A DNA stretch of 64,000 nucleotides. It comes from Pavona decussata (taxonomy: Eukaryota). The notes below the pieces were generated by a model, which saw nothing but the letters and a program-made list of their open reading frames with translations, made no database searches and was not told the DNA's origin. The position numbers and the translations under genes were made by a program. The DNA lies in assembly GCA_977016875.1 (NCBI GenBank), contig CDRNST010000204.1, positions 682,001 through 746,000 of the forward strand. The letters are read 5' to 3'. Of the stretch, positions 913 to 63,755 are shown one piece after another. The stretch's first letter is position 1, and every line of letters begins with the position of its first letter.

Positions 913-1310
913 CTGGTGGTTGCCTCGAGCTATCATACGCCACAATACCAGTTGGTAGGCCGCTTGCGATGTAATTACTGATTAGATAATCCCCAGTGTC
1001 GGCGTCAAGTATGTGAAGAAAGCTTCTTGCAACCCAATCAGTGAAAAACAAGAAAGGAGGAATCAAGGCCACTCCAAATGGATGAAAACCGTTTATTTTT
1101 AGCAGTAACTTCCTGTTGTTTCCTTGATAATCCACGGATTCTATTCTATCCACGCCTCCATCCACCCAAAAAATGCGCTTGTTTCCTCTGTCGAGTTCGA
1201 TACCATTCGGCCAATGGAGATTTGATGTTACTATGGCAACTCTTTGATTGCCACTTAAGGTTGCTTTTTCTATTTTTGGATTAGTGCCCCAGTCAGTCCA
1301 GATCATTAAT
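913..1310 (-). CDS. Gene A exon 3: YWTD propeller 1, second half
   Basis: TGACAG acceptor, GTACAG donor; LMIWTDWGTNPKIEKA...WPNGI...HPFG...YDSSRQPP. Confidence 0.92.
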
Positions 1311-3570
1311 CTGTCAGATAATAAAGCCAAATATCAGTGATTATAGGACAATGCCCCCTTGTTCTACTGCGCATACGTCCTACTCATGTCGAGACGGTCT
1401 AAAACAAAGATATTTTGCACGGTTATGTTTATGCGGTAAAAGTAATGTTAGCAACGATTTTTTGAATACAAAATCTTACAATGGCAACCAATTTTCGCGA
1501 TTATCTGAAAATTCCTATTTTTATGTAAATTTCATATTTTCCATGATTTTCGTGTTTTTAGTTTTATTTTTATTTTGATTACTTTAGTAGTTTTCTGAAG
1601 TTTTGGGAAAATTAAAAAATCCAAGACAAATCGTACTGTAATTGCAACTCATACAATGTCACTACTTTTCGTTGCGGACCTAATCTATTCTCCAAGTCCC
1701 ATTGTGAGTCATAGCTTCATATTTGCGAAGTTTTTGAGAGGGCGTCCAATTCTTCTCGGTCGAGATAGATAAAATTTATAAGAAAAGGCCATCAAACCTC
1801 GTGGCCTGTTTAAAATTTCGTTGAAGCTTATTTTCAACTGGTTACAAAATAAAGGTGTTCATCGCCAATTGGTTATCGGTGTTCCATGGCAAGCAAATTT
1901 TAGCTCAGTCCTTTTCATGGCTTTCTGAGATTTTGGAGAAATGAAACTGAATTTTCTTGGTCCTAAGGGGCTGTTTACATGGTGGGAGGAAGATCCGAAC
2001 ACTAGGAGGGTGGATCATCCTAGCGCCATATTTTTTCTTTATTCAGTTTACATGCAAAACGTTGTATTTGTGCCTAGCGCTTAAGGATCTTCCTGGCAAT
2101 AGAATCTTCCTAACTAAGATATAAGAAGATCCTAGCACCATGTAAACTACCTTCGCTTGGCCAAGGACTAGGAACAAAAAGAACAAACATATGGTGGCAG
2201 CCGGGCGTTCAGCTGCTCAAAAAAAAAGGCAAATATTTTTTCTCTTTTCCTTCTCCACTTGGTAACCACCCCGACCGAAATTTCTGCATGTCAACTATAT
2301 GAAAAGTTGTTTCGCCTTCTAGAATTTTCCTAATGCTGGGATCTTCCTCTCTCCACATGCATGTTAACAGCCCCTGAGTTCAAGGCTTACCCTTGGTCGG
2401 GATCCAGAGCAATGTCTCTAGGTTCATCAAGCCCCAAGGAGAGCAATGTTTTTTGGTTATTGCCCGATAAGTCTGACACTGATATCTTATCGTTTGTTGT
2501 ATCAGTCCAGTATAACTGTGATGTCCTCCATTCCACTGCCAATCCATCACAGACACCAACGTTTGTGATGATAGTTGTCACGCTTGATCCATCAATAGCA
2601 GAACGTTTGATATTTTGTTCACTCACGTCACTCCAAAATATATACCCCAAACTGAAATGGACATCAATGGCGATAGCGTTTGTTAAACCAGAAACGACAG
2701 ACTGTGCTGTTGACGTTTTGTAGTCGAGGGCTACGATTTCCCTTCTGTTGGTATACAGGAGGCATGGAGGGCTGCATATGGCGGCTATAATCAGTAAACC
2801 AAAACAAGATCGAGGGACATTTGTTAATTTAAATGTAAATGTGATATTTAATAGGGCGCTTAAGCAACGACGACGGCGACGGCAACGACAACGCCGCAGA
2901 ACAATAGGTTAAATGAGCGAAAACAATCGCTCTGCACGTGCGTTTTACATTTTGGTACATTTCTCTGCCGTCCTCTGCAAAACAACAACGTGAAATGACA
3001 CATTTAAGGTTTTTTGGAGAACGTAAACGCACGACGGTGAATTTTTCATTTTCTCTCATAACTTGTACGCCACTCCTACCAATTTGGATAGTTCACCGTT
3101 TTTGTAAAAGTTGAGCGAGTTGAAATAATGGCGAAGTAGCACAAATGATAAAGATATATTTTCAGGTGACGTTTTCGTTGCCGTTGTCGTCGTTGTTGCT
3201 TAAGCTCCCTAATATCCAAATGACTGCACGTTGTACTGTTTGAATAATCAAGAAACTCAGTGTTAGAAACTCAGTTAACAAACTTATATTGCCTTGGCCT
3301 AGAACAGAGCACCTACAGAAGCACAGCTTCTCCTATAGTGGTGCCGCTTTATGGAATTCTTTGCCTCAGGATCTAAGCTAGGCAATACGACTCTCTGGGG
3401 GTTTCGAAAAGAAATTAAAGCCTTCTTTTCTTCATAGGACTCCCACACGGCAATCATGTAAGCCAGTTGATTTTTTTTAGCTGATATTAGTAATTTTTAA
3501 AACAGTTTTAAGCATGCTGGTGATTTTCCGTGAATAAATAAACAAATAGCCTGAATGTGACGCGATATTA

Positions 3571-3642
<72 letters not shown>

Positions 3643-5569
3643 TTAGTACAGTTAGTTATCTATACGGTAAAAATAACAACAACAACTGTAATAATTTGGT
3701 AGTTATTCGCAAAGTAAAACAAAAAATAAATAAATAAATAAATAAATAAACAGTTTTCTAACGTGCGCGCTCATCTTATCTCAGTTCTTCCTTATTGGTT
3801 TTGCTTCTTATCTGAAAGGCTTATTCCGGATAACAAATCTCTTTTAAGATGTTTTGGTGTTTAGTATCGCTGTCTATTTTAATTTTACTCTTAGTATTTT
3901 AAGCCCTACGTCAGGCTCACTAAACTACAGCGAAACTCTAAGAAATATACAGCTTAGTATCTACAACACATTAAAACATCCAATAAGATATAATACTGCA
4001 GACCTTATATCAAAGTGTTGCTACTAACTTCCGTCTTTATAAGAAGTTAACTGGGTGCTTAGGGTACAAAGCTTATGCCAAAATAAATAAATTCATTGTA
4101 TATTCAGTCCCCCCGGGGGGGGGGGGGGTACTCCCCTGTATGGGCTATACGGGGACGTGCCGCTGGATAGGGTATGGTTTTTGGCCTCCCTGTCCTGAAC
4201 AGGGTATATAATTTCAAGCGAGTCTGTCCTCGACCCGTCCTATACAGGGTATGGTTGCAACACTGTCGTCAAGTATTTCGCAATCCAAAATCAGAGACGT
4301 TAGTCTGTATTTATTTTAGTGAACTATGCTTCACGTCAATTGAGTTTCCACTTAAGGTTCACCGCTGTTAATGCGAAATTTTGGGATTTTTCGCCATCAC
4401 TGTTCTAGGTAGTGTATCACTTGTGTAACACAAGAGCTAGATGTTGTCCTTTTTCCTAAATAGGGTCCTAAAATAAAGGACATTGTCCTACACAGGTTAA
4501 GGTTATTTTCGTCCTAAACAGGGTCAGGGTTTCAAACCCCCAGCGGCACCCCTCAGTCCCCTTTTCATATTTCCAGATGTTTCTGGAGTTCCCGCTTGAA
4601 CAGACAGGAAAAACGTCTTACTACTCTACTGGCAGTAATTTATTATCAAATGGCTTATTATTTAGAGTATAGTAAGCGGACTCTACTAAAACAGCGATTT
4701 TTTTCTGGGATACAGAATTAAATGACGGGCCGACATTTTGCCGTATCAGATGTCATGGTTAGTTTAATTGCGTTACGATCGCTCTCAGCTTTAGCCTCCT
4801 ACGCACCTCGTCACGCACTCCTCCTGCAACTTAGCTACTGATACCATAAATCAAAGAAACTATTTGAAACGATTTGACAAGGAAACTAAAGAAAACATAT
4901 AAAGTGGCTTAATATAGAGAGAAAAGACCAAAGGGGTCATTTTTTGAATCCTTACAAAAATATGGAATGAATGCTCTAAATACGATTATTAAATGTTATT
5001 TCAGTATATCTATTCATTTTGCTGACAGATATATAAAAGCCTCGGAGTACAAAGAAAAGTTGTCAAAAGTGAATTATTTTTTTACCTAGTAAGAAAACTG
5101 AACGGTCAGTTGTTAAAATTAGCGACTTTTGTTCAATTTACAGTTTCCAACCTTAGCTTTTAAGGGAACCCTTATGTTTGGTAACCCTAGATGTAAAGCA
5201 AATTGACTGTTGAGAATCAGACGATACATTACATGCCCTGGCGTGTCGGACTAGCAACAAAATGGAACTTGTTTCCTCAAGGAAACTTAATATAGTCTAT
5301 CATGACTTAATATATTTGTTTCCATGCTACAATAACCGAGATTGACTTCATGAACTGGTCCACAACAGGAAAAATGTTCTAACATGCTATTGTAGTTACT
5401 TCATTTCATGACGTATAGATAGAAAAGGTCGATAAGTTCGTGGTATGAATCGCAGCAAAGAAATAATTCGGTTAAAGTTACCTCCAAAAATGTTTGCAGT
5501 TTTCTCTTGAATGAAGGCCAGCACAATCAGTGCGTACATCCACTTTATGAGTTTCCTGAAGTTACTCAT
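913..5569 (-). CDS. Gene A (5' part only): LRP-type YWTD beta-propeller receptor, tandem paralogue of gene B; continues past the left edge
   Basis: Three exons 5482-5569, 2391-2784, 913-1310 splice in frame (phases 1, 2, 1). They give a signal peptide plus one full YWTD propeller (IFWSD, LYWTD, MIWTD, IFWVD, FFTDW). Exon lengths 88/394/398 nt equal gene B exons 1-3. Confidence 0.9.
1967..2374. mobile_element. PIF/Harbinger-type MITE
   Basis: TIR GGGGCTGTTTACATG...CATGTTAACAGCCCC, flanks TAA/TGA, internal GATCC(T/G)AGCAC-type repeats. Confidence 0.75.
2391..2784 (-). CDS. Gene A exon 2: YWTD propeller 1, first half
   Basis: TTATAG acceptor, GTAAGC donor; [20 protein letters not shown]...IFWSDVSEQ...LYWTD...[12 protein letters not shown]. 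Confidence 0.92.
2853..3210. mobile_element. MITE with (ACG/GAC)-microsatellite-containing TIRs
   Basis: AGGGCGCTTAAGCAACGACGACGGCGACGGCAACG...CGTTGCCGTTGTCGTCGTTGTTGCTTAAGCTCCCT; a degraded copy of the interior lies at about 43945-44445. Confidence 0.85.
3265..3545 (+). mobile_element. CR1/L2-clade LINE 3' fragment
   Basis: Translates to KLILPWPRTEHLQKHSFSYSGAALWNSLPQDL*, the typical post-RT C-terminal motif, followed by a 3' UTR ending AATAAATAAA. Confidence 0.75.
3572..3641. repeat. (AAT)n microsatellite
   Basis: Directly visible. Confidence 0.98.
4109..4554. mobile_element. Non-autonomous DNA-element-like repeat
   Basis: Starts CCCCCCGGGG...GGGTACTCCC; recurring CAGGGT/TAGGGT motifs; GCCGCTGG near the start and CCAGCGGC near the end are inverted. 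Confidence 0.6.
5482..5569 (-). CDS. Gene A exon 1: signal peptide [29 protein letters not shown]
   Basis: ATG at 5569-5567, basic then hydrophobic segment, GTAACT donor; near-identical to gene B exon 1. Confidence 0.85.
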
Positions 5570-6479
5570 GTTCCTGAAAAATATCCAGATTCTTTTCAAA
5601 AAACGACTGAAAACATACTTAGTGTAAAATTTTACTGTAATGTCAGAACCGAAAAGTTGAAGTCTGTCTGCGCGTATTGATCTACATGGAAATTCTGTCA
5701 TCTAAAGAACAACCATTTATAAGAATATGGAGGCATGGACCGGTAACCTGCAAAAGCAGAGTAGAAATAAAAACACGACGGCAGTTTTTAGGTGGGCTAT
5801 TAGGTATTGAAAATAAAGAAACTGGAAGTTACGCAGGCCATTAATTATTCCTCCATGGCGTTATCCCAGGCAAGGAGACAAACAGACAGCCTTTTGCCCT
5901 TTGTTTTGTGATTAAGCTTGCTTTATAAAGGGAGAGATTGTAATGTTGTAGTGTGTGGATTAGAACAATACGAAGACTGATGAGAAGTTCGCTTCACTGA
6001 ATGACGGCGAAAGCTGTTTGAGGACAGCAAATTGTGGGTCGCCTAGTAACACTTCCGCTCTCGCGGACTGCTCAACAACCGGAACAAACTTCACCAAGGA
6101 ACTTACCGCACTGAGTTAATGATCCATCATGCGCTCACTAAACCAGGATTTTACACACGCACTCAGCTGCCGTGAGGCTGATTCAAGACTACGCAACTGA
6201 AATGCGTGTTTCGGTAGAATCGTGCCTGAGGGACTGACTGATATGGAAGTGAAGAAGGTTTGAATCATAATACCTTCGGAGCTCTTCAAACATGTTCACG
6301 CAAGCACTCAACCCCTGACCTCAATTCAGCGCTGACTCACGAAAAATACTGGATTAATGAGTCTTGCACGCATGTTTTTGGACTTGCACAATAACAGCCA
6401 AAATACAAGGGGATTATTTTACCTGTTAGGACAGGTTCAAGTGACATGAAATTCCACGAGAACCTGTGAATAGCAAACT

Positions 6480-6530
6480 AATGTTGGTGGGAGGCGGGTG
6501 ATTTCACCACTGTGCCATCCCTGCTCCCCG
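6480..6530 (-). mobile_element. tRNA-derived SINE 5' fragment
   Basis: Minus strand GGGGAGCAGGGATGGCACAGTGGTGAAATCACCCGCCTCCCACC with A-box-like TGGCACAGTGG. Confidence 0.55.
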
Positions 6531-8388: not shown

Positions 8389-8493
8389 TTAGGACCAGTT
8401 CAATAATATCTTGAAGAACAAAGGCGCACCTTTCGAAATATTGGAATCCATTTAATTTCCTTACCCTGAATCAGCCTTGCTTTCCTGTATTTT

Positions 8494-8741
8494 CTGGCCC
8501 CAGTTGTTCAAAGGGCGGATAACTTTATCCAGTGGATAAGTCACTATCCAGCGGTGCAAATGTACTCCAAACAGCACTTCTGGCAAGTTTTCCACACAAT
8601 CCCATACTTAAATTAGACAAACGTTTCTACTTTATACACAAATTTTAGGGCTATAGTGAAATTCTTGAACGCATTTATTTGCCGCATAGCGACCTATCCA
8701 GTGGATAAAACTATATCCACTCTTTGAACAACCGGGGCCTG
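8494..8741. mobile_element. MITE, copy 1 of CTGGCCCCAGTTGTTCAAAG family
   Basis: Long TIRs with TATCCAGTGGATA palindromes; close copy at 61619-61865. Confidence 0.88.
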
Positions 8742-9836: not shown

Positions 9837-12800
9837 CTAGGATAAAAAAGATTTATTAAAAACTGGATCATTGTTATAATGCATTTCCAGGGATTTGATT
9901 GGCTTAGCGGTTATATGAGCGATTGCACCATGGCCTAGAAAGAGCGACCATTGAGTCATCTTCCGGTTGTTCTCGAAAGCGAAATCAGCAAGACTTAGCA
10001 ACATTGCGTGGTTGCTTTTAATAAAACAGTTATTCCAATTATTGCTTGTTGGGTATGAGATGATAGATACTAGCCTCGTTGGCCATCTATCATGTCATAC
10101 CCAAGGCGCTCTTGTGGAATAATTGTTAAATACACCGCAACTAGAACTGTGCGGTAAGTTAGAAGTACGCTTGGGAACATTCCTTAAAGATTCTCATGCT
10201 TATGCATTACCGTAGGTTAATCACCAATTGTATAATTCGCCTCAAGGTCAGAAAACATTAGTGGATTTTCTCCTCGAATTCGTCTCGGGGAATATTCACC
10301 AATATTTACTTCGCCTTCGGGGAATAATTGTTAATTAGTAAAATTACTCAGATGATTATAGAGATTCCATTGATCTCATTGGTCGAAGATTGCGCCATAT
10401 CTTGCTTATACAAAAACAATTATTCAGGGTCAGGAAATATTGGTAATTTTTCTCTTGACTATATTTAACAATTATCCTGCGAAAACGCCTGATACTTAGC
10501 CCACGAGGCCGTAGGTCTCCAAGAACGTACTTATTGAAAATTGGTTGAAAAATTGAACGGTGAGTGATGGGGTCTATAAGAAGTGTGGATGGTTATGGAT
10601 TATTGGTTGTATCACTATATGAGTTTCCTACCAAACATTCTCAAACTCATTAAGAATTCATGAAGAGAAAACAAAGGAAGTCACTACCGTGAAGGAGGTT
10701 TGGAAATGCGATCTTAATTATCATAAAATTTTGTGAACTTTTGCTTCGAATTTCTCCAAGAATTATCAGTAGTTTGAGAAGCTATATCAAACACTCGAAA
10801 GCCCGGTGTTTCCTCCTATTTCCAAACACCTCGAAGTTGGTTGAAAAAAAAAAAACTCGGCTCCGCCTCGTTTTTCCAACCTACTTCTCGGTGTTTAGAA
10901 ATCGGAGACAACACTTTTCCTCGTGTTTGATCTATTACTTCACACTTACCGACAACGTTTCCATGCACACCAAATGACCACAGCCATTAAAAGAACAGCG
11001 AGAACTGCTATAACAATAATTAAAACAAGCGTCGTCGTGGACAGTCCTTGGCTTGGCTCACTTGGAAGATCTAAAGGAAAAAGGAAAAAATACACTTCCA
11101 CATGACACAGATAACTTGAGATTCTTGGAGGAAATATGTTGGTATTACACTCAAGCTTTGATATGCAGCAAAATCACAGTGGAAACCTAAGATAAAAAAG
11201 TTTCAGGAGACTGGTAATATCCGGGTGTAACGAATTAGTGCCGTGGAAGACGACCAAAATCTTCAATCTTCACTACTTGGAGCCGAGGGGCGGACAGAGA
11301 AAATCCAGAAGGAGGGGGCCGAAGAAATTGTGACGAGAGCCACAAATCAAATTATCGATTCAAAATAAAGTTGACCTTGGCAGTCCTGCCGTTGTTTTGA
11401 TCCTTGCTGTCCAGAGGTTGAAGTCCCGGATGGACAAAGAATGCAGGAGGTCTGGGCTTCTTGATCCTGGTATTGGTCTACTGCGCATGGCTGGCATCTG
11501 GTACCATTAAAGAAGTAACCAACAGGACAGTTGACTAGTTAATTGGAAAAAAAAAGAAGGATGATTAATAACATTTGAAACTGTAATCCTTTATCAGTTC
11601 TCCTTTATAGATCACACTGAGTCTCTCTTTATAACCCTTCAACCCCTAATATCAAGGAACAAATTCTCATATCTTGTCCCCATACTTTTCAGGCAGAAGT
11701 TATTAAAATATACCACGAAAGTTAACCTTGGGTGATCATAAGCTTAATTCTCATGATCTCAGGGGTTGAATAAGTATTGATATTACAAGGAGAAATTTGA
11801 TGCTGATCTCTGTAAGGGCTAATCAAGGATAGGGGAAGAATGTAAGTTCGTCCTCCGGAGTCAAGTGGATAAGAAAGGCTTGTCGTCAGCTTATTGTCTG
11901 ATATTTCTATTTTTTAAAGACTTCTTGGTTGTTGGTTAGTGGGGTTGTTTAGGCCATGAACAGCCTCGTTTTCATTCCTCAACAAACTATTCGAAGAAAC
12001 CGAACTTGTGAACGAGTGACCTCACATCTCTCGGCGACCTGAGGATGACTGGGGACAAGGCTGCTATATCGGCTGGATCGACAACAGTTTTACGGGCATG
12101 TTGGTAATAACAGTCTGCAGCAATACATTAAGCTTGGCAGCAATTAAATATTTTTATTAAATACTGCTTACCACATTTGCGCCCATTTTCCACTTGTCCC
12201 TCATCGCAGATAAGACGCATGGCGGAAACTTCTACAGGTCTTGATGTGTCTTTTACTAACACAGTTCCACTAACATTTAGAGTCATGTCCTCCTTGTTCA
12301 AAGCCGACATGATGTCATTTGATATTTGTAGAGAAGTCCGGTTGAAATCCGATTCGTTGGTGTTGTTAGGAAGTGGAACTTTTATTGTGAAAATGACAGT
12401 CAAAGGAATTTTAATACTTTGGTTTTCCTCATTTATATCTCTCCTTTTACGAGCCTCTGTTTTTTCTCCGCATTCGACCTTGACGTTCCCAATCGTACAG
12501 TCTGGGTGACCATCACAAGCTCCCGCCCTTCCAAGAGAGGTCCTCATTAAAAGCTCAATGAAGTTACCAGCGATCTGTTTGTTTACTTCTTCTGTGCCGC
12601 AGTTGCCAGTTAGGTAGTGATACTTCCCATTCAGTAAAATTCCTTTTGGTTTGTGTGTTTCTATAAAGAAAAGAGAGCGTTTTCTGAACTGAAACTGTTG
12701 GGAAAAAAAAAGTCATCTCATCTGTTTTTTTTTTTTTTTTTTTGCTAAACAAAAGAATTGTATAGACACAGGAAAGGAAAAGGAAAAAAAAGTAAATGAA

Positions 12801-18800: not shown

Positions 18801-20061
18801 CTGATCTGTGGGTACGTTTATTCTGAGAATTTGGGCTATTTCAGCTACTTCAATTAAATTTCTCTTCTAAGGAATACCCTTAACATGCTACACTATTAAG
18901 CTAAATGGATGTGAAAATACTTAAATAAACTTTCAAATCGGCGCTAACATTCGGCGTAGGTGCCCTGCTGTTCCCTCGATTCTGAAGACACAAAGGATGG
19001 TTTGAATTTGTAAATTACAGCACCTTCTACAATTGTTAGAAATGTAAGCGTATTCCTAACCTCGACAAGATGCTGCGAGTCCACTCCAGGTCTCGTTTTC
19101 CAGGCACTGCCGCCTTGACGAGCCAGTGAAAATGTAACCAGCATTGCAAGAGAAACTGCATATTGTACCATAGTGTTCGAAGTGTGGATCAGAACAACCA
19201 ATGTTATGTCCATTTGGTGGAGCGGGGAGAGATGGACATCTAATAGCTGTAAATAAAATGGGCATGAGACTGATTTCAGAAATATTAATAATTCATAAGC
19301 CCATTGACCTATCAAATGGTCGATAAAACATCACGTACAGAGGTTTTAACACCTGATAAAACCTCCTCCTTATTAGTATGCGGTGTTTAATGTTTTTCTC
19401 GTATGCTAAATTAAACGTTCACAAAAGCATTATTGTTATGAACTCTCTTGATACACGCTTTTCCAGGAATGTTTTTGAAGCCGTTCAAAATGCTCGCACC
19501 ACGTGTTTTATCAGGTCTAAAACCACTCGGCTACGCCTCGTGGTTTTAAATCCAGATAAAACACTGCTGCTCGTGTTTTAAAAAATTACTAATGTACTAA
19601 TACACCGTGAGAGTCACTTTCGTTCGTGTCTAGGTACTGTGCTGTGGGGAAAGGGATGTTTGGACCCCTCCAATCGAAAATTATTGGATCACCCCTCTAA
19701 CTATTGTTCAGATGATTTCTACTTTCGCAGTTTTAGGCTACATACCGATGAACGTAGGCCCAGGAAACCTAACGAAATGTTTATTTTTTTATTTTTATAA
19801 ACTTCGCCAGAGGAGAACCTCTCACAGGAGAGAACTCACAGAACGATAAGTTCCAATAACAAGACTCCTCCTACTACTAATCATGAAATAGCACAAAGAC
19901 CAGACCAGCACACCGGGAACTCCATGCCCTACTCTTTTCGATTAGTGTGTGGGTTCTTTAACGTCCAACAGGGTTATGAACATTGAAGTGCTGTGAGACG
20001 GGGCCTACGGTTTATCGTCCTTATCCGAGAAGACTAGATAGCCTAACCATTTGCAGATGTC

Positions 20062-20101
<40 letters not shown>

Positions 20102-41800: not shown

Positions 41801-41909
41801 TTGTACATGTTCTACCTTATATCACAAGAATTTGAATACGAGAATTTTATATTTGCGGATAATGTGCTTAATTTTTAGGAGTGCATAGGGTTGTGTTAAG
41901 AGTTGGTCA

Positions 41910-41983
<74 letters not shown>

Positions 41984-43414: not shown

Positions 43415-43456
<42 letters not shown>

Positions 43457-46034: not shown

Positions 46035-46127
<93 letters not shown>

Positions 46128-54404: not shown

Positions 54405-54477
<73 letters not shown>

Positions 54478-57400
54478 CTTACTGGATAGCTATGCTAAAG
54501 AAGAGTTTATTGATATCCTGAGAAGTTCGTGTAAGCACATTTGACAATGCTTTTGAAACTACCTTGAGACAGGCAATATTAAATATATTGTTCATCGACA
54601 AACTTCCATGAAACAAAGAATTCATTTTTCCCCTTTCTCCCAACAACTAAGCCAGTGTTTATTCAAACCAACATCAAATCTAATGTTCATTCTAAAGCAT
54701 TAAAATGAAATATTTTCTTATCCAAAAGTGTTTGAATTGTTTTCCATGACTTTTTGAGCAGGTTTGAAGTTTTGGATAATACTATTTGTATCAGGTTTTT
54801 ATCAATTTCCTTGCAGATGTGGTTCCTCCTGTGTTCATGAGCTGTCCCTTAGATATCCGTACTAGTCTCAGCATACATTCGTCCGCGACGGTAAACTGGA
54901 CAATTCCTGTTGCCTTGGACAACAGCCACATGGCAGTACAAATCACAGTTTCGCCACCAGGCCTTGCTCCACCGTACACTTTTTACAATAACACAGACAT
55001 TGTGTACACTGCGACGGACACCAGTGGAAACCAGAGAAAATGCTCATTCAGAGTGATGTTGGAAGGTGAATAAAAGTGGAAAGTGAACGTAAATCTAAAG
55101 AAAGTCCGTTGTCACACTGTTGTTTGGTTACCCTAAGTGTCCAAATAACAATCAATGAATCTCAGGACCTCATTGCCACTTAACGCGGCCAGAAAACCTC
55201 ACAACTCGGCACCTTAATGTACCAGGTTCCACTCGAGGATTTTTTTCCTAACCACTTATTAAAAGCGAAACAAGATAGGACTGTCGAATAGCAGGTTCAA
55301 ACTGTACACTAATGGGACATTAATGACATAATTTATTAATACGTAGAGCTTTTCAGCACGGGATTACAAACAATGGTTCCATAACTTACATGTCCATCAC
55401 TTTTGGGTCTATCCTTCGTAACATAACAGTATATGAAGAAGTAGCCAAGATGTAATTACTCGTAATGACAAATCCTAGTCTTCGAGCAACTCGAAACAAC
55501 GTGTTTGCTTCTTTTCTTCCAGACAATTCAGGTCCCGAGGTGGTATACTGTCCTCCAAACCAAAACATTACTGTCACCCAAATGAAGACAGTCGTGACAT
55601 GGAACAGTCCACAGTTCAAAGATAATAGCAACGGTCCTTTGGTGATTGCATGCAGTCACAACACTGGAACTGCGTTTTACTGGGGAACGTGGAACGTGCA
55701 CTGTACAGCCTATGACAACAATCCTAATAACAACCCTGCTCACTGCCAGTTTACAATAAGTCTAGAGCGTAAGTAGCATACTGAGCGGTACCTTAGTAAC
55801 CCAAAGGCATGAAGATTGAGAATTTCCTACGTCAACGCATAAGCTTTTAAGCTTCAGTAGTAAACGCAATCTATAAAGCAGAAGTAAATGTTCTCAATGC
55901 TAATTAATTAGGGACTGTGCAATAATTAACTAGAGAGGGAGGGGAGGGGGGTTGGGAAACCAGAGGGGGGCATAGGGACATAGGGGAAAATCACAACTAG
56001 AGAGGGGGGTAGGTGTAAATTTAATACATACGAAGGGGGGGAGGGGGGCATAACTTTTTCTCTCTTTTTCCCAAAATAGAAAAGTGGTAGAAGAGTTTTT
56101 AGAGTTCAAATATTTATACTTGCTTACACTGGGATTAAACTGGGAAAACATCAACTCGAGGTGTTTTGATCTCTGATTATTTAGTATTTTCCTATTTGTC
56201 CTGCAGTTGGAAAGGAATGCCTACGTGACATATTAAAACAGTGCTACTTTATTGGCACCAGATTTTGATAAAGCAGGACCAATTAAGCGTTGTAGAAGTT
56301 GCACTATGATGTTATTCAGTGAAAAAGAAAGATAGCAATGTAGGATAGCCTACATGGTATTAACAATTAAAGAGAATGGAAACCCAATTGCTAAATTGCT
56401 ATGTAACTATAAACAGTATTTAGCAAAGTACACTTATAAGTAAGCCAAAGTAATAAGCTCAATCAGACAAGAACTTCTTAGTCACATTTTCAGATGCTTC
56501 AACATAGCTTCTGGAGTTCAGAAGATCTTTTAAGCAAGCTTTGTCTGTTGCAGATGTAACTTTGGCAATCTGACAACCCAGTTACAAACTGGTCTGGCTT
56601 CCTTCGCGTTGAATTATTCGATCTGTTTCGTGAAAGCGTAATTTTTTTCGCTATGAGCTCTCCAATTTCCACCGTTCAAACTTTTGAGTACTGCTTAGAA
56701 GTTATTATTTCGATTTGCCGCTTATAAAGGGTTTGTTTTTTCTTTCCTGAAACGGCAGATCAGAGTCTTAAATTCATATACGTGGCCGCCATTGAAAAAC
56801 AACCTTTCAAATGATGATTTGCTTTGACGTCCGGATGAGTAAGTCCCCTTCCTCGTAATATACGAGCCGAAAATGATTGGGCTCTTTTTGGTGAAGACAA
56901 TCAGAACAATAGATCCCTTCTAGGAGGAATCAAAATTTAATCCAGGTTTAATGAATAAATCAAATGATGATTTGATATTTGTTGAAGACATTCAGAACAA
57001 TATATCCCTTATAGGAGAGAGCAGAGTTTAATGCATAAACAAGATGCCTATACTGGCATTACGCGAGATGCTGTGGCTGATTCATCTATTCTAACTGTAT
57101 GCTTCGCAGATTTATAAAACCATCATTGCGAATAGTTTGAGTCACGAAGATCGCAATACGTTGTTTCCCTTGTGTTACGCCGATTAGGGTTTCACCGGAA
57201 ATCTCGGAAATTCCATTACAATAACGTAAGCTTCTCAATAACCTTCTTTCAGGCTCCCATCGTGGTCTAAGACTGTCAAACAAAGCACGATTCCTTCGCC
57301 AGGAACTCTCCAATTTCCACCGTTTTAAATGTCGAGTGCTTCTTACAGGTTATTCTTTCGATTTACCGTTTCAAAATGGTGAAATTTCCGTTTGAAAACG

Positions 57401-60400
57401 GCACACTTTAGTAAACAATATGTTAACAATATGGCGCCACAATTTAATCTGGTTTTATGAATAAATCAAATGATGCTTTGATGTCACACAGGTAGTCGTG
57501 AGTGGGTACCCTCCCTCGCGATATAAGCGACAAGAATGGATTTTAATTGACCTGCCTTTGCTGAGGCAATCAGGACAATACATCCCGAGTAGTAGAGGGG
57601 AGGGTTTGATGAACAAATTAATGTACAGATTTGTGGCTACGACGAAGAAAAAAAAAACAAACAAGATGCCTATACTGGCATATACGCGAGATGCTGTGGC
57701 TGATTCATTTATTCCAACTGTATGCCTCGCCGATTGATAAAACTATCATTGCTAATGGAATATTTAGAGTCACGAATATCGCGTTATGTTGTTTCCCTTG
57801 TGTTACGCTACTGAGGGTCTCACCAATAATTTCGCAAATTCCATTACGATAACGTAAGCTTCTCAATGACCTCTTTTCTGTCTCCCATCGTGGTTCGGGA
57901 CTGTCAAACAAAGCACGATTTCTTCGCCAGGAACTCTCCAATTGCCACCGTTTTAGATGTCGAGCGCTTCTTAGAAGTTATTTTTTCGATTTACCGCTTC
58001 AAAATGGTGAAATTTTTGTTTGAAAACGGCACACTTGAGTCCACAGCATGTTAACAATATGGCTCCACAAATTTAATCCGTTTTTAATAAATAAATCAAA
58101 TGATGCGTTGACGTCACACAGGTAGGGGTGAGTGGGTCCCCTCCCTCACGATATAAGCGACAAGAATGGATTTTGATTGGCCTGCTTTTGTTGAAGACAA
58201 TCAGAACAATCAGAACAATACATCCCGAGTAGGAGAAGGGAGGGTTTAATGAATAAATTAATGTACAGATTTGTGGCTACGACGAAGAAAAAAAAAGGAA
58301 AGAAATCGACCCGTTTTTAGACACGGTATGCCCCCTCCGGGCATCCCGCGTAAAAAAGAAATCGACCCGTTTCTAGACACGGTATGCCCCTTCAGGGCAT
58401 CCCGCGTGATTAATGTGCAGATTTGAAGCTACAACGAGGAAAAGAAGAAAAACAATAACTGACCAAAACCTTGACACGGTCTACACTGCGGGCATCCCGT
58501 GTAATTATTAGGGGAGGGGGGTTGACCTTTTTATTATCAGTAGGTGAGGGGGGTTAAAGTTAAGTTTTACTTAGTGAGAGGGCGGGGGGGGGGGGGGTGC
58601 GACTTGAGTTCGAGCCGTATTTTGCCCATTTTCCAAACATACCCCCCCCTTCCCCTTCCCCTGGTAAGGTAATTCTTGCACAGTCCCCTATATTTAGGCC
58701 AAAAAGTGTAACGCTAGCGTATAGCGGGGAGTTAAACTCGTTTGAACTAAAGAATTCAAAAATCATCGATATCAATCAAGCATCAGGTTTTCTCTTTGCA
58801 TTTTACATATATTATAATACCTACTAACTCACAATGTTTCATCCTTCTATAGCAAAAAAATGCACAGACCTTTCTGCACCACGAAACGGAGCTAGAGCTT
58901 GTGATGACTGGGCCTTAGGTCGACAGTGCACTCCCTTCTGTAATGATCAGTGGGATTTTACACACAAAATACCACCATTTACAGTCTGGACCTGTGGAGC
59001 ATCGGGAAGATGGCTTCCACCAACGCGGTGGCCCGACTGTTCAAGTTAGTAGTTTACTGATTCAATTATATAGTTAACTAATAAATACAGTCGAACCTCC
59101 CTTTGCGACCACCTCTCGTAAGCGACCACCTCTCATTAGCGACCACTTTCCCAAAATACCAATCACTATAGATGGAACCTCTTGTACGCGACTATCTTTA
59201 GCGACTCGTAAGCGACCACTTTTAGAGATGATTGCTTAAAATTTTGAATTGTTTTCCACCTCCCGTAGGCGACCATTTGACACACAATCGGCGGTATCTC
59301 TCAAATTGAAATTGAAAAATGTGTCGCTGTAACATATTGGCCACATCATTACAGCAGACGCCGTAAATCTCACAGTCGGAGCTACCGGAAGTGTTTCCCG
59401 ATATAGCATTGAAACAATTGATAAAATACACCTGCACTATACTTCACACTGAAATAAACTTTAATCAGATTGCATCCATCGTAGGAAAAAAAACTTCTTA
59501 TCTTTTATCTTATCTTTTTGCTTATGTTCCTTTCCCTGAAAAATTTGACATCGCTACCTAGAGTAATAAAAGAGTCAAGTATCTTTCATAATAATTGTCT
59601 CAATCGCTGTAATTTGTGAGATACAAACAATAATCACCATAGATCCTAAGATTTTTTTGCCTAGAATAATTTTGGACCAGTCTTAATATACTGGTAGCTA
59701 AGAAAAGTTATTACTATGGCTAAAAGGGTTAGGTCTCCGCAATTACCATATCTGATATTACCCGATATTTAGACCCTCTCTGGTGTGACCTCTGGTAAGC
59801 GACCACCTCCCGTAACCGACCACATATCTTTGACATTATGGGTGATCTCTTACGGGAGGTTCGACTGTATTTTTAGTTATAAGACTTTATTTCCAAAACT
59901 TTGTAGAATCATATGTACCAGGCCAATCAAGAATGGCAATGGATTTGCATTACTATCATGGAGACTGCACTACGCCAGAGGCACAAGCACAGATAAAACA
60001 AAACTTTATTCTGATCCTCAACGGCTCAGCGTTGAACGATATATGCAATGACCCTGACTTAAAGGAGAAATGTAACCCTGAGAATGTCCAGGTCACGTGC
60101 TCTATGGTTGATTCTACTGCAGTCAGGAAAAAGCGTTCAACAGGTGTGTAGAATAGAAATATTATAATGTATAGAAATAGTAACTTTCTAGCTTAGAAGA
60201 ATGAAACCTTGTTTACACTTACAAAGCAAGCATAGTAGAGTACGTTTAGCACTTTAACACGAGTTGTGTGAAAGGTCAAACCAAGAAAGCAATCAAGCGC
60301 ATTATTATTTTTGCCGAGAATAGGCACAAGTGCAAGAGAAAAGTAGTTTTATAATTTTGCTTTCTTCTGCTTTCTTAAACTTATAAGATTGCTTCGATCG

Positions 60401-63400
60401 GTTTCAAAGAATACGAGTTGCATTGACGCTTAATATATGGTTATGCTTGAACTGGAAACTAGCGAGATAAGAATAGAATTATAAATGTAATTGCTCTCAC
60501 TTGTCACTGAGATTTGATGTTCCTCGCCGGTAATTGATTGTTGCACTGGTCATAAAAGATTCAATTCTGCTACGGGTGTCAACAAATGAGTACACTCGCT
60601 AGTCTCCTGGAACTTTTGCAACTTCCATCACCATGTTTTTCTTCTTCTTTTTTTTTTTATTTATTTTTTTTATTTTGTAGATGATGACGGGGCTCATGGA
60701 AGAACGCGACGATCGCTAGTTCCACGAACAACAATCCGTGTCGTCATAGTTGGTAAGTTTGATTTGCATTGTTTATTGCCGGTTGTTATTCGAATTGTTA
60801 AAAGCAAATGTAGCCTTCCACACTGGCGGACCCGATTGTTCGAAAGCCTATAACGCTAATCCAAGATAAAAAGTTAACCGAGGTTTTCATCTCGCTGGTT
60901 AAAAAAATGTTTTAAAAAACTGACGTTAAACTAATAGTACAGAAAAGTCTAATGTAAAACCGAGGAACAAAAATATTTTGGACAAATTCTTTTCGGATTA
61001 GATTAAACTCGAAACACAGTTCACGTTAACACAAGAATAGCTTAATCGGGCCAGCCTTTGAACTACTCGGTGTCGGTCTTCAACCGCCCTGCTGTCCGTA
61101 ATGTGTTCCAGTTGTAATACTAATCTCCAAGATTTTAGTAGTGAACTTGGGTGGAGAAAACCAAGCACTTGACGACAAATGCAAAAAGATTTAATGCTAT
61201 TCAAATCTATATAATTTGGTCTTATTATGCACGTGAGAATCTAAGTGCTCAATTTATCAACCGTTGTAACAGCTTACCCTCTGTCATAAAGGTGTCAGTT
61301 ATCTTGGTGTTAAATGCTGCTCAAAATTAATCGCTTTGCCTCACGATTGTGTCACATGGGTATGTATCAATACTTTGCGACCTCTACAACATCAATCAGG
61401 AGCAATGGGATTAAAATTGTGGGAGCATGGATGCTCCACGATAAAACAACAGCTGATTGGTTCCACAGTGGCTGAGGGAAAAACATATAGCCTGAACAAG
61501 ACGAGGATACAATTCAGCCAATCGGTAATAACCAAAGCGAGGACCGCCGAAATAAACCATCAATTACGGTTATACTTTATTAATACACACAGAGTCAACG
61601 CCATCACCTGATGAAGACCTGGCCCCAGCTGTTCAAAGAGGGGATAACTTTATCCACTGGATAAGTCACTATCCAGCGGAGCAAATGTGCTCCAATTAAC
61701 GCTTTTGGCAAGTTTTCCACACAATCCCAAACTTAAATTTGGCATCTGCGTCTACTCTGGACACAAATAATAGGTCTACCGCGAAAATCTTGCTCATATT
61801 TCATCTGCCGGAGAGCGACCTATCCAGTGGATAAAATTATCCCCTCTTTGAATAACTGGGGCCAGCAGTAAAGCGGTGAAAACTTTGCGACACAGTGAAT
61901 CATGAGACAAAGAATTAGTTTTGGGCTTTCAGCGTAACCACTGGAATGCGGCAAGCAGAATCCCTGCATGATTTTTTTCGAATCCAGTCCAAAAGTCAAA
62001 TTAAGAACTTGACGCACTCCAAGTTTGACCTTCTTTCGCCACCAGCAGCTTAAATAGGCGATTAGACTAACCACAGTAGCAAGAAAATTTTTCTACCCTA
62101 GACTAACTCAGTATTCTAAGACGCTGGACAAGGCAGACATTTTCTGACTTCTCGTCATATATTTTTCCCTCAGTTCTCATCACGGTGAATATCACTGAGG
62201 TAAATGTTACAAAACAAAGGAAGATTTCTGCAGGCTTGGCGGGCGTTGAGGAGGCCAAAAATATTAGTCGTAGGATTACGGAGGCCGTGCAGAATGGCAG
62301 TTTTAGTTTCACTATCAATGGCACTGACTTTGTTCCTGATGTGAAGTCCCTAAACTTCTCAGAGCCTGAACTATCATGTGACAAAGGACAAGCGCTTTCA
62401 GATGGAGTTTGCGGTAATTTGGATATATTCTATGCGCACGCGTAAGATATAAGATGTCATAACTATTCTATATCTAGAAAGTCTCAGTGTATTTAAGATT
62501 ATGTTAGCAGTCAAAACATATTCTGAAATCTTGCTGATTTCATTTTGCAACAACGTACCAGACGGGGATTTAATGGCCTCCTTTTCTGGTGGCATGGCAT
62601 AATGGCTCATATATCCCATATCCCATGGCCGCCTAGCCAATCAAAAAGCTGGAATTTTATTATCCAGTGATCCACTCTTTGAAAAAAACAATAGATTAAC
62701 TACGATAAAGTTCAAATTTCAACTTGTCGCGAGCGTACGAAAGGAAAAAAAGCATGATTCCCGGCCGAGAACGAGCCCATGACAATAGCTAATCGGCCGG
62801 ATACTCTACGAGTGAACTGGGCACTTCTGTCGGGCTTGGTTCCGATGAATCCTGTTTTTCACTATTCCACTGAAGCTGGCTTTATTGGCGTTCGCTAATC
62901 TGAAGGTATTAAAAGCCACTAAACTCAAGAAATTGCTAACTCGTTTACTTAACACGAGAACATGGGGAGTTAGCAACCTCGTTGCCAGAGTCCTCAAGAA
63001 ATTGAAAATTGTGAGTGGTGATGACCCTGGTATATTGCCACGAATAGATCCTTCTCCAAAATGGTGGCAACAGATTTGAATGAGTTAAAATTGAACTGAA
63101 TGAAAAACTGATACCAGCACTGGAAAGAGCACCTTTACTTTTTTAGTAGCCTTGCAACGTTTCAGCATATTAGGTGTTATATCAGCTTAGGAAATGTAAG
63201 ATGAAATTTGACAAATTTAGAGTGACGTTTGTATGACTGGGGGTATATGTCATATCCCCAGTCATACAAATGTCTGTAAATTTTTCATTTTTCAACTTAC
63301 ATTTTCTCAGCTGATATTACACCCGATATGCTGAAACTTTGCAGGGTTGCTAATGTAAAAATGCTCTTTCTAGAACTGGTATACGTTTTTAATTTTAACT

Positions 63401-63755
63401 TATTTGAATTTCAATTCCCGCCACATTTTAGAAGGAGTATCTGGTGAAGACGCCTTGTTATCTGATATGGTTGTTTTCACTTCTTTTTATCTAGTCTGAA
63501 AATAATGCAGCAAAAGCAAAACTCAAGTGTGCCGATTATTAGGAATTCCAAAGATAATAGTAGTTCATTCCAACGTATTTTTGCTTCATACAGTGAGTTG
63601 TTACTACGGAACGTACTTAAATAAGACACTTGGCACATGCGAGGACTGCCCAGTCGGAACATATCAAGATCAAGTGTCCCAAGAAACGTGTTTACTGTGT
63701 GCACCAAAAACCTCAACTGAAGATACCAGAACGTATAATCGCTCCGGCTGTATAG
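35789..63755 (+). CDS. Gene C (3' end outside window): SVEP1/polydom-like modular protein, SP-TSP1-EGF-CCP2-HYR-CCP3-HYR-CCP3-HYR-CCP2-HYR2-CCP-furin linker-ephrin-receptor-like...
   Basis: 22 exons traced, all introns phase 1 with GT-AG boundaries, and no in-frame stop found. Confidence 0.9.
36295..39906. repeat. Duplication-inversion complex in gene C intron 1
   Basis: Direct repeat about 36295-36682 / 38003-38370; inverted repeat about 36707-37589 / 38501-39906; third partial direct copy about 39917-40235. Confidence 0.9.
39103..39636. mobile_element. Tc1/mariner-type MITE nested in the inverted arm
   Basis: TIR CCGTATTTACTCGAATAAG...CTTATTCGAGTAAATACGG, TA/TA flanks, GCGGCGCTTATT subterminal repeats. 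Confidence 0.92.
40606..40790. mobile_element. Short palindromic MITE
   Basis: ATAGACCTTTTTCATAAATGG...CCATTTATGAAAAAGGTCTAT. Confidence 0.88.
41434..41570. other. Assembly gap
   Basis: Run of N. Confidence 1.
41913..41983. repeat. (TAT)n microsatellite just upstream of the gene C exon 2 acceptor
   Basis: Directly visible. Confidence 0.98.
42008..42286 (+). CDS. Gene C exon 2: TSP1 + calcium-binding-type EGF
   Basis: GNWGPW...[53 protein letters not shown]. Confidence 0.92.
43398..43456. repeat. (AAT)n microsatellite
   Basis: Directly visible. Confidence 0.97.
43600..43791 (+). CDS. Gene C exon 3: CCP
   Basis: PSPSNG...CTVTCNPGY...CGNQGSW...PNC. Confidence 0.9.
44526..44708 (+). CDS. Gene C exon 4: CCP
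   Basis: CSRLAPPDKG...CSYECFPGY...CNNGYW...C. Confidence 0.9.
45344..45703 (+). mobile_element. DINE-1/Helentron-like end: terminal hairpin followed by (GACT)n microsatellite (spans a gap)
   Basis: TT then CGAGTG-ACA-CACTCG hairpin (45350-45364), then (CTGA/CTGG)n. Confidence 0.5.
45453..45585. other. Assembly gap within (GACT)n
   Basis: Run of N. Confidence 1.
45787..46035 (+). CDS. Gene C exon 5: HYR
   Basis: DTQPPSFGETCP...ATDND...YTAKDPSQNTKFCHFIVNV. Confidence 0.9.
46038..46442 (-). mobile_element. 5'-truncated CR1-like LINE with (ATT)n tail
   Basis: Minus strand SLLRYLGPKLWNDL...QQFKRV...NC*GCNLC, then a 3' UTR, AATAAA and (ATT)n at 46038-46126. Confidence 0.78.
46673..46867 (+). 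CDS. Gene C exon 6: CCP
   Basis: CQVLSPPANG...CRMQCYRGY...HWTGNATFC (not in the ORF track). Confidence 0.9.
47485..47676 (+). CDS. Gene C exon 7: CCP
   Basis: CPSLDTPAHA...CFFNCMLGF...CQENRQWSG...C. Confidence 0.9.
47827..48027 (+). CDS. Gene C exon 8: CCP
   Basis: CPAM...CRFTCKSGY...CSQSKSW...PSC. Confidence 0.9.
48491..48779. mobile_element. MITE
   Basis: TIR CAATCATGGACAAAAGTTGTTGAGACA...TGTCTCAACATGTTTGTCCATAATTG. Confidence 0.8.
48936..49184 (+). CDS. Gene C exon 9: HYR
   Basis: DVSGPTFSNCP...ITWTEPTASDNSG...ASDKTGNVGECKFKVFV. Confidence 0.9.
49665..49859 (+). CDS. Gene C exon 10: CCP
   Basis: CVPRLYAPAGG...CFFTCHVGH...FWTGNETKC. Confidence 0.9.
50403..50594 (+). CDS. Gene C exon 11: CCP
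   Basis: CPRLDPPPHS...CLLYCDIGY...CQADGTWSGQAPYC. Confidence 0.9.
51089..51277 (+). CDS. Gene C exon 12: CCP
   Basis: CQSLQVPNNS...CHFSCRKGY...CLSDGRWS...C. Confidence 0.9.
51896..52141 (+). CDS. Gene C exon 13: HYR
   Basis: DVETPSFGVTCP...VTWDPVIATDNSG...ASDEAGNYKTCKFYVTV. Confidence 0.92.
52926..53117 (+). CDS. Gene C exon 14: CCP
   Basis: CQTLLPPLNG...CRMSCDDGY...YWDDSVPVC. Confidence 0.9.
53695..53960 (-). mobile_element. Second copy of the Deu/Nin-type SINE, internally deleted
   Basis: Co-linear with 19868-20188 but lacking the segment between AAAGGCAGCAC and GGCCGGGGTTTGAACCC. Confidence 0.85.
54010..54207 (+). CDS. Gene C exon 15: CCP
   Basis: CSSLQQPQFGFIYP...CYLECRHGF...CGKDGKWS...C. 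Confidence 0.9.
54408..54475. repeat. (TA)n microsatellite
   Basis: Directly visible. Confidence 0.98.
54817..55065 (+). CDS. Gene C exon 16: HYR
   Basis: DVVPPVFMSCP...VNWTIPVALDNS...YTATDTSGNQRKCSF. Confidence 0.92.
55523..55768 (+). CDS. Gene C exon 17: HYR
   Basis: DNSGPEVVYCP...VTWNSPQFKDNS...CTAYD...HCQFTISL. Confidence 0.92.
55911..58687. mobile_element. Harbinger-type element carrying a nested Helentron-like tandem array
   Basis: TIR GGGACTGTGCAATAATTA...TAATTCTTGCACAGTCCC, flanks TTA/CTA, G-rich subtermini. Confidence 0.78.
57037..58504 (-). mobile_element. Helentron-associated (DINE-1/HINE-like) non-autonomous element, tandem units of about 622 bp
   Basis: Units start at 57037 and 57659; subTIR TACGCGAGATGC vs GCATCCCGCGTA; stem-loops at both ends. 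Confidence 0.65.
58853..59044 (+). CDS. Gene C exon 18: CCP (post-HYR type)
   Basis: CTDLSAPRNGARACDDW...CTPFCNDQWDF...GRW...WPDCS. Confidence 0.9.
59088..59867. mobile_element. Tc1/mariner (pogo-like) MITE filling most of gene C intron 18
   Basis: TIR CAGTCGAACCTCCC...GGGAGGTTCGACTG, TA/TA flanks, GCGACCAC repeats. Confidence 0.92.
59907..60143 (+). CDS. Gene C exon 19: linker part 1 with furin site RKKR
   Basis: LHYYHGDC...QIKQNF...NVQVTCS...VRKKRST. Confidence 0.9.
60681..60752 (+). CDS. Gene C exon 20: 72-nt exon with second furin site RTRR
   Basis: Long pyrimidine tract + TTGTAG, GTAAGT donor; DDDGAHGRTRRSLVPRTTIRVVIV. Confidence 0.8.
60824..61070. mobile_element. Degenerate MITE (GATTGTTCGAAAGCC...GCTTAATCGGGC...TTTGAAC); half copy about 43835-43935
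   Basis: Imperfect TIRs and a shared interior. Confidence 0.6.
61619..61865. mobile_element. MITE, copy 2 of CTGGCCCCAG family
   Basis: CTGGCCCCAGCTGTTCAAAGAGGGGATAA...TTATCCCCTCTTTGAATAACTGGGGCCAG. Confidence 0.9.
62174..62413 (+). CDS. Gene C exon 21: linker part 3
   Basis: VLITVNITE...FSFTINGT...LSCDKGQALSDGVC, homologous to the end of gene B exon 24. Confidence 0.88.
63046..63442. repeat. Imperfect palindrome of about 400 bp with no spacer
   Basis: Core GACGTTTGTATGACTGGGG...CCCCAGTCATACAAATGTC (63224-63274); pairing extends out to TCCTTCT/AGAAGGA. Confidence 0.85.
63594..63755 (+). CDS. Gene C exon 22: ephrin-receptor-like Cys-rich repeat
   Basis: SCYYGTYLNKTLGTCEDCPVGTYQDQVSQETCLLCAPKTST...GC; GTAAGT donor, so the gene continues. 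Confidence 0.92.

Follow-up and report, generated by a model that had tools for sequence, protein, structure and literature searches.

A cluster of Polydom/SVEP1-like genes with varied N-terminal heads in the stony coral Pavona decussata

Within contig CDRNST010000204.1 of the stony coral Pavona decussata (C204 below; genome 602 Mb), the 64,000 nucleotides at C204:682001-746000, referred to here as the window, show three members (A, B, and C) of a group of at least five neighboring genes (D, E, A, B, and C) that extends over about 190 kb. Our reading of this cluster, to which we assign a probability of roughly 0.8, is that it consists of at least five Polydom/SVEP1-like genes on an old core, in which two old subfamilies lie head to head and have been varied by duplication and exon shuffling. 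All five genes share the Polydom core, that is, a run of Sushi and HYR domains ending in HYR-HYR, a CCP-like exon, a domain of about 160 residues with a predicted SEA-like fold (the linker), and ephrin-receptor-like repeats. The initial annotation of the window had described a clustered family with a common module and varied N-terminal heads, which the mapping of the five genes bears out, and had suggested looking for further members on either side; these were found as D, E, and the rest of A.

All stop-free stretches of the window were translated and compared mutually by window-internal BLASTP, and candidate exons were scanned singly against Pfam, the joining of exons being confined to a frame check and to trees. 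The flanks, C204:562-682k and 746-806k, were searched for domains with profiles made from exons of the window.

Gene B occupies the minus strand from about 33270 to 10949. In the exon-wise Pfam scan, a signal-peptide-like exon is followed by three units, each made of a YWTD propeller in two exons and an EGF exon, and then by a rod of the order Sushi x3, HYR, Sushi x3, HYR, Sushi x2, HYR, HYR; after the rod come a CCP-like exon, the linker with the motif RKRR, one Ephrin_rec_like repeat, and a transmembrane (TM) helix. The features of B, all on the minus strand, are as follows:

33106-33270, minus strand: first coding exon, with a predicted signal peptide (hydrophobic N-terminus; conserved with the first exon of A)
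24181-32515, minus strand: head as a whole (Pfam Ldl_recept_b and FXa_inhibition)
32075-32515, 30896-31369, and 29966-30331, minus strand: head unit 1, propeller/propeller/EGF (Pfam)
28840-29283, 27839-28285, and 27275-27451, minus strand: head unit 2, propeller/propeller/EGF (Pfam)
26308-26789, 24905-25305, and 24181-24315, minus strand: head unit 3, propeller/propeller/EGF (Pfam; exon ends from spliced contigs)
23766-24181, minus strand: head-to-stalk intron, removed by splicing in contigs from two RNA runs
14248-23766, minus strand: rod as a whole (Pfam Sushi and HYR; ends of the first four exons from RNA joints)
23593-23766, 22804-22989, and 21971-22153, minus strand: first set of three Sushi (Pfam)
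20993-21285, minus strand: HYR 1 (Pfam)
20410-20652, 19059-19292, and 18198-18452, minus strand: second set of three Sushi (Pfam)
17526-17828, minus strand: HYR 2 (Pfam)
17064-17363 and 16102-16605, minus strand: two Sushi (Pfam)
15395-15670 and 14248-14604, minus strand: HYR 3 and HYR 4 (Pfam)
13344-13607, minus strand: CCP-like pre-linker exon, without Pfam match; matches C 58828-59046 at E 1e-10
12173-12658, minus strand: linker, a single exon of 162 residues, without Pfam match (stretch scanned 12131-12712)
12440-12451, minus strand: RKRR, predicted furin site in the linker, in the loop between strands 2 and 3
11350-11538, minus strand: Ephrin_rec_like (TKE/GCC2_GCC3) repeat (Pfam PF07699, E 1.9e-10)
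10949-11173, minus strand: TM exon, with a clear TM helix and the tail WKRCR, then TAA

In both A and B this TAA stop overlaps a donor-like site, GTAAGT; no conserved cytoplasmic exons were found downstream of the TM exon of B, where the search turned up repeats only.

Gene C lies on the plus strand, has its first recognizable exon at 41872, and runs past the right edge of the window to about C204:759.3k. Its order in the window is a weak TSP_1 plus EGF, Sushi x2, HYR, Sushi x3, HYR, Sushi x3, HYR, Sushi x2, and HYR x2, and after the rod a CCP-like exon, a linker spread over two exons, and Ephrin_rec_like:

41872-42327, plus strand: head exon, TSP1-like and EGF (Pfam FXa_inhibition/EGF_CA; TSP_1 below cut-off)
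43536-43820 and 44474-44710, plus strand: two extra head Sushi (Pfam)
45732-46229, plus strand: extra head HYR (Pfam)
46654-55773, plus strand: rod as a whole (Pfam)
starts 46654, 47394, and 47739, plus strand: first set of three rod Sushi (Pfam)
48842-49198, plus strand: rod HYR (Pfam)
starts 49634, 50378, and 51070, plus strand: second set of three rod Sushi (Pfam)
51880-52164, plus strand: rod HYR (Pfam)
starts 52829 and 53961, plus strand: two rod Sushi (Pfam)
54780-55070 and 55456-55773, plus strand: last HYR pair of the rod (Pfam)
58828-59046, plus strand: CCP-like pre-linker exon, containing APRNGARACDDW, without Pfam match; matches B
59912-60145, plus strand: first half of the linker, ending in RKKR, without Pfam match (stretch 59846-60148)
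62173-62415, plus strand: second half of the linker, an exon of its own, without Pfam match (stretch 62107-62442)
63506-63760, plus strand: first Ephrin_rec_like repeat (Pfam)

The coding part of the head exon begins at about 42010, after a (TAT)n run at 41900-42010, and the exon is 41% identical to the head exon of D. Beyond the window, C continues for about 14 kb with two further Ephrin-like repeats, about 23 EGF repeats, and a pentraxin exon, followed by EGF x2 and a second CCP-like/linker/Ephrin-like module. No TM helix of C was found after this second linker module, and no Sushi exons were found after the pentraxin exon up to C204:806k. Between the two linker halves of C, an open frame at 60590-60850 on the plus strand encodes DDDGAHGRTRRSLVPRTTIRVVIVGKF, with a second basic motif, R-x-R-R.

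The initial annotation had stated that B and C carry the same ordered module under different heads. The exon-wise Pfam scan recovers the domain orders that it described, and the peptide motifs quoted in it are all present at their exons. Moreover, the window-internal comparison extends the likeness to the exons without Pfam matches: the B and C copies before the linker align at E 1e-10 and those of the linker at E 1e-7, while the Ephrin-like exons align at 2.5e-7; at E 1e-10 to 1e-7 this likeness is not by chance. The name of a common stalk does not hold for C: the same block is present in both genes, but in C it is followed by the EGF repeats and pentraxin and thus has an internal position in a long SVEP1-like protein, away from any membrane-proximal place. 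C is SVEP1-like, and its protein is probably secreted.

Gene A is on the minus strand at C204:642-687.7k and leaves the window at the left edge. Its part inside the window is:

902-5701, minus strand: 5' part of A, with the signal-peptide exon at 5399-5701 and propeller 1 at 2390-2908 and 902-1333

The proposal of a tandem copy for the relation of A to B is only partly right: the head, the tail, and the TM ending are those of B, and the first exons are 67-85% identical to their equivalents in B, but A has 13 HYR domains against four in B. Ten of the 13 are near-copies of the HYR1 type of B, and C204:650.9-672.7k is taken up by about nine Sushi2-HYR units whose HYR domains reach about 85% identity with HYR1 of B. 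This pattern of repeats indicates that the rod of A is a recent tandem expansion of the Sushi2-HYR unit, which would have tripled the length of the rod relative to B. Gene D (plus strand, C204:571-606k) is collinear with C throughout and carries the tail that C has past the window, at 60-76% identity. Gene E (plus strand, C204:614-631.5k) begins with a signal peptide and six TSP1 exons, the first of them combined with EGF, and continues with a stalk of the order HYR-Sushi2-HYR-Sushi2-HYR2, a CCP-like exon, a linker contained in one exon, and an Ephrin-like repeat. By these predicted structures the members of the B-type (A, B, and E) are type I membrane proteins, in which a single Ephrin-like repeat precedes the TM helix and a very short tail follows it.

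Genome-wide, the linker profile matches about 16 loci. At C167:392.6-411.9k, C24:1834.7-1873.7k, and C144:2780.0-2810.1k, VWA, two HYR, the linker, Ephrin-like, and pentraxin matches lie on one strand, and these three loci probably represent the coral's canonical polydoms. A pentraxin match is present at every C-type locus. At C79:571-638k and C273:1465-1627k a C-type gene on the minus strand stands head to head with a YWTD-headed B-type gene on the plus strand, so that the divergent pair occurs three times in the genome, the window included; it may reflect either a block duplication or an old linkage. The linker of the B-type gene on C79 is 77% identical to that of B. In the window itself B (minus) and C (plus) lie head to head, and the intergenic region 36200-40000 contains direct and inverted repeats (36792-36923 matches 39689-39820 on the opposite strand, 82% at the protein level), which are probably a transposon remnant between divergent promoters.

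Evidence for the joining of head and stalk comes from RNA, used here as contigs of public runs; contigs of three runs from three studies were mapped to window positions 20900-26890. They contain six spliced joints, all GT..AG on the minus strand (CT..AC as read). One of these, 24181|23766, seen in two runs of two studies, joins the last head EGF exon of B to its first Sushi exon, and the joined exons form a single open frame of 618 amino acids that comprises propeller 3, EGF, and Sushi 1-3 and enters HYR 1. The contigs are more than 97% identical to gene B. The head and the stalk of B are thus parts of a single transcript, as the initial annotation had assumed, and because the spliced joint is in frame, the alternative that they belong to separate genes fails for B. 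The RNA-defined exons have lengths divisible by 3 (174, 186, and 183 nucleotides for the Sushi exons and 135 for the EGF exon), and the joint coordinates give a symmetric phase 1-1 for both the Sushi exon 23593-23766 and the 135-nucleotide EGF exon. Exons of symmetric phase 1-1 shuffle easily. In the B introns, the stretches 22300-22700, 25300-25500, and 26100-26300 reach a summed RNA contig depth of up to about 2700, with contigs that continue into dissimilar sequence, which suggests repeats transcribed at other places in the genome and not B exons.

Three assembly gaps lie in the window, and none of them overlaps an inferred exon:

29306-29580, no strand: gap 1, in the B intron between the EGF1 exon and the next propeller exon
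41434-41570, no strand: gap 2, upstream of the first recognizable exon of C
45453-45585, no strand: gap 3, in the C intron that separates a Sushi exon from a HYR exon

The open frame of the B propeller exon adjoining gap 1 ends 22 nucleotides before the gap. At the corresponding position of the gap-free paralogue A the EGF and propeller exons are adjacent, and at the position of gap 3 the gap-free paralogue D has Sushi and HYR adjacent; a domain-sized exon is therefore not expected in either gap, a small one being possible. The model of C begins at its first recognizable exon, after gap 2, and is thus partial at the 5' end, where a signal peptide would lie.

The linker of B is matched by no Pfam model at E 0.01, SEA included. 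A profile of the coral copies retrieves 448 proteins at E up to 0.001, and the named matches, which are 'SVEP1-like', SVEP1, or uncharacterized, come from sea urchins, starfish, a brittle star, Ptychodera, Branchiostoma, molluscs, Exaiptasia, and Actinostola. In the SVEP1 of amphioxus and urchin the linker stands directly after Sushi3-HYR2(-CCP) and ahead of the Ephrin-like repeats, and a CCP-like exon precedes it in most homologues; the connection drawn in the initial annotation to the CCP-HYR-HYR-CCP-linker-ephrin-like block of SVEP1/polydom was correct. The domain has six conserved cysteines, and 88 of 109 full homologous domains carry R-x-[KR]-R (about 4% would be expected by chance in our estimate), which forms the consensus at a single aligned position. 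The self-cleavage motif GSVVV does not occur in the linker sequence. An AlphaFold2 model from 77 sequences (predicted local distance difference test, pLDDT, 83.6) is a beta-alpha-beta-beta-alpha-beta sandwich, in which the loop bearing the furin motif has the lowest confidence and the basic R-x-K/R-R site occupies the loop equivalent to the SEA cleavage loop. A model from eight sequences was set aside at a pLDDT of 58.7. In a VIA-align comparison with 48,161 chains, the top five matches are SEA domains with Z of 7.1-9.1, the best being the zebrafish Gpr126 SEA (Z 9.1, root-mean-square deviation 2.9 over 107 residues) and MUC16 SEA reaching Z 8.3. Foldseek against the PDB gave only weak, mixed ferredoxin-like matches, a search of the PDB with the linker profile found no chain, and a search of the ESM Atlas gave a sub-threshold SEA lead (score 0.79). 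We assign the linker a SEA-like fold with moderate confidence; it is a domain conserved across many animal phyla, without a Pfam model, and with the furin motif in a loop predicted to be exposed. The closest outside relative of the B linker (78% identity) was found on ctg14239 of the ENA record ERZ26692694, a contig of 380 kb, where it is flanked by open reading frames for a reverse transcriptase and an endonuclease of the LINE (long interspersed nuclear element) type; the contig probably stems from a related coral whose assembly was deposited as a metagenome.

The age of the two stalks was addressed with trees. In the HYR tree, which takes in amphioxus and urchin SVEP1, domains group by position across phyla, with the last and next-to-last HYR of the coral genes joining HYR2 and HYR1 of SVEP1, respectively. 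A starfish protein, Patiria miniata XP_038050592.1, has the order YWTD x3/EGF, Sushi3-HYR x3, Sushi2-HYR2, CCP-like, linker, Ephrin-like x2, TM, and its last HYR is sister to the last HYR of the B-type; the partial Actinostola record KAK3707436.1 follows the order of B up to the linker, where it ends. The core-module tree (HYR-HYR, CCP-like, linker, and first Ephrin-like repeat; 461 columns) joins the starfish protein to (B,(A,E)) at a support of 98/96, and proteins of Ptychodera, B. belcheri, and Diadema to (C,D) at 94/98; neither type is nearest to the SVEP1 rows. Forcing the five coral genes to be monophyletic costs 19.9 log-likelihood units and is rejected (p-AU, approximately unbiased test, 0.017). 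The linker-only tree (163 columns) leaves the deep nodes unresolved and does not join the starfish protein to B. By these trees the stalks of the B-type and the C-type fall into different old groups that predate corals, and the supposition that the family is lineage-specific gives way to two groups with bilaterian members, an outcome of the kind that the initial annotation had itself specified as refuting its interpretation. Within the B-type clade, E with its TSP1 head is sister to A with its propeller head, and B and the starfish protein lie outside, so that a single replacement of the head in the coral line would be the simplest history.

Comparison with known systems sharpens this picture. 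The initial annotation knew of no description of such genes, but for Nematostella the literature (PMC12549020, eLife 2025) already reports an expanded Polydom-like family, whose members have a Sushi-HYR-TKE core in common and carry TSR or Ig domains in addition. It includes three canonical polydoms, four Polydom-like proteins, and one core-only Polydom-related protein, and its members are components of the mesoglea or basement membrane that rise at the larva-to-polyp transition (PMC12549020). Compared by description only, the coral genes resemble the Nematostella Polydom-like proteins in the expansion, the core, the extra end domains, and, as far as A-E were scanned, the lack of VWA; gene E fits that description closely, and the three probable canonical polydoms of the coral agree with the three NvPolydoms. 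If Polydom-like is defined by the core without VWA, pentraxin, and the terminal Sushi tail, then A, B, and E belong here, and C and D, having pentraxin, are intermediate. An LDL/YWTD head, a TM anchor, a furin site, a SEA-like domain, and a gene cluster are not mentioned in PMC12549020; the anchored branch with propeller heads, the linker's predicted fold, and the gene cluster, with its one replaced head (E) and its one expanded stalk (A), are possibly new within the literature searched.

With SVEP1/Polydom the coral genes share Sushi-HYR-HYR, CCP, the linker with its furin motif, and Ephrin-like repeats, the HYR domains corresponding by position; the EGF run and pentraxin are found in C and D but not in A, B, or E. 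Of 691 VWA candidates in C204:562-806k, the 150 with the best scores included no VWA domain, the 5' end of C adjoining a gap, and the long C-terminal Sushi tail of SVEP1 is missing from A-E, in C as far as C204:806k. In addition, A-E carry several extra Sushi3-HYR units toward the N-terminus, and the B-type adds a TM anchor and propeller or TSP1 heads. The Patiria proteins XP_038050592.1 and XP_038050591.1 have the same order as B, Ephrin-like and TM included, and differ by an additional Sushi3-HYR unit, by a second Ephrin-like repeat, and by a longer tail of some 120 residues; these proteins and the Actinostola relative are automatic predictions. The modeled linker has in common with GPR126/ADGRG6 SEA, MUC16 SEA, and Notch HD the sandwich and a cleavage motif in the loop between strands 2 and 3, and differs from SEA domains in its six conserved cysteines and in having no Pfam SEA match, PDB sequence match, or GSVVV. 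GPR126 SEA and Notch HD are cut by furin. Finally, the heads of A and B resemble the LRP4/5/6 arrays as tandem YWTD propeller/EGF units, the nearest solved relatives of the B head being LRP2, LRP4, LRP6, nidogen, and LDLR, whereas the remainder of the protein is Polydom-like, no Ldl_recept_a (LDL-A) match was found in any scanned B exon, and the tail of B is WKRCR and not the NPxY tail of the LDL-receptor family.

Taken together, a tentative mechanism can be outlined. In A and B, a triple LRP-like propeller would be held about 12-30 domains from the membrane by a stiff rod of Sushi and HYR, and C and D would be long, SVEP1-like matrix proteins with two linker modules. During secretion, a furin-type convertase would cut the SEA-like domain at its exposed loop, and the two parts may stay bound non-covalently through the shared sheet, as in Notch HD or GPR126 SEA, so that the large ectodomain could then be released or opened by force. 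Diversity would come from tandem duplication and phase-1 exon shuffling, as in the replacement of the head in E and the Sushi2-HYR run in A. By analogy we infer that these proteins are matrix or cell-adhesion molecules, and the sea-anemone data make such a role more likely than immune recognition. A bolder version, which we regard as doubtful though possible, is that the B-type constitutes an old subfamily of cnidarians and echinoderms, undescribed in the searched literature, of membrane-anchored Polydom-like receptors that could be shed or force-opened at a furin-cut SEA-like joint, and that the coral cluster is varying this design now, through the head of E and the three-fold rod of A.

Several points weigh against the interpretation of the cluster as Polydom/SVEP1-like genes of two old subfamilies, or against parts of it. 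The RNA evidence covers gene B alone, and the B tail may extend beyond the TAA/GTAAGT site. The ground for calling C secreted is solely that no TM helix was found, in a gene model that is partial at the 5' end (by the gap) and at the 3' end, and the model of E and the heads of the paralogues on C79 and C273 were drawn from exon positions. The SEA match is moderate, as a Z of 8-9 is near the common or background range of the tool and the Pfam SEA model is silent. A furin cleavage site close to R997 is mentioned for human SVEP1 (PMC13722417), and a homology of the coral furin loop with that site would be supported through the architecture of amphioxus SVEP1. In both trees the starfish protein has a long branch (1.8-2.0). 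Lastly, the evidence on the coral proteins is at the level of genes and RNA, so that their cleavage, location, and any ligand would be predictions.

The long starfish branch, together with the linker-only tree, which does not join it to B, would also fit an independent origin of the YWTD-plus-stalk architecture in cnidarians and echinoderms by phase-1 exon shuffling, for which the symmetric Sushi and EGF exons checked here would make fusion easy; the B-type would then lose its standing as an old subfamily. We consider such a convergence improbable, given that the 461-column core tree joins the starfish protein and the B-type at 98/96, that the last HYR domains of the two are sisters, and that the head, the Sushi3-HYR ... 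Sushi2-HYR2 rod, the linker, the Ephrin-like repeat, and the TM helix agree in order.

The initial annotation favored a coral-specific array of immune, symbiont, or allorecognition receptors with interchangeable heads on a recently shared, cleavable stalk. The clustering of the genes, their three kinds of head, the apparent head replacement in the coral B-type clade, the recent expansion of the A stalk, and the linker-bearing loci in the genome, about 16 in number, agree with such an array. It conflicts with the position of the B and C stalks in different old groups with bilaterian members, with the presence of the whole architecture of B in a starfish and, up to the linker, in a sea anemone, with the SVEP1-like structure of C (EGF and pentraxin, no TM helix found), and with the matrix nature of the sea-anemone relatives, and we hold it to be quite unlikely. 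That the cluster is an artefact of haplotigs or collapsed assembly pieces, or of head and stalk exons from separate adjacent genes, could draw on the three gaps and on RNA in the form of contigs and not of raw reads, but it is very improbable, as the paralogues are 50-85% identical in protein, far under the level of alleles, the spliced contigs, more than 97% identical to B, cross the border of head and stalk in frame, and the gaps are intronic or intergenic.

The main value of the interpretation as an old Polydom/SVEP1-like cluster is a correction, since the supposed new receptor system belongs to a family already known to be expanded in cnidarians. In addition, the predicted SEA-like linker with its furin motif may offer a structural reading of SVEP1 processing, and a propeller-headed, membrane-anchored branch of the family appears, from predicted proteins, to occur in corals, sea anemones, and starfish.

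Some further repeats were observed around the genes. A short dispersed repeat is common to 8464-8645, downstream of B, and 61556-61868, in a C intron, and a local repeat block is located at 57089-58420 in the long intron of C before the CCP-like exon. Minisatellites of coding appearance, with repeats of the type HSFI... and CQNPEFKIL..., lie downstream of both E (C204:631.9-632.5k) and C (C204:760.6-761.3k).

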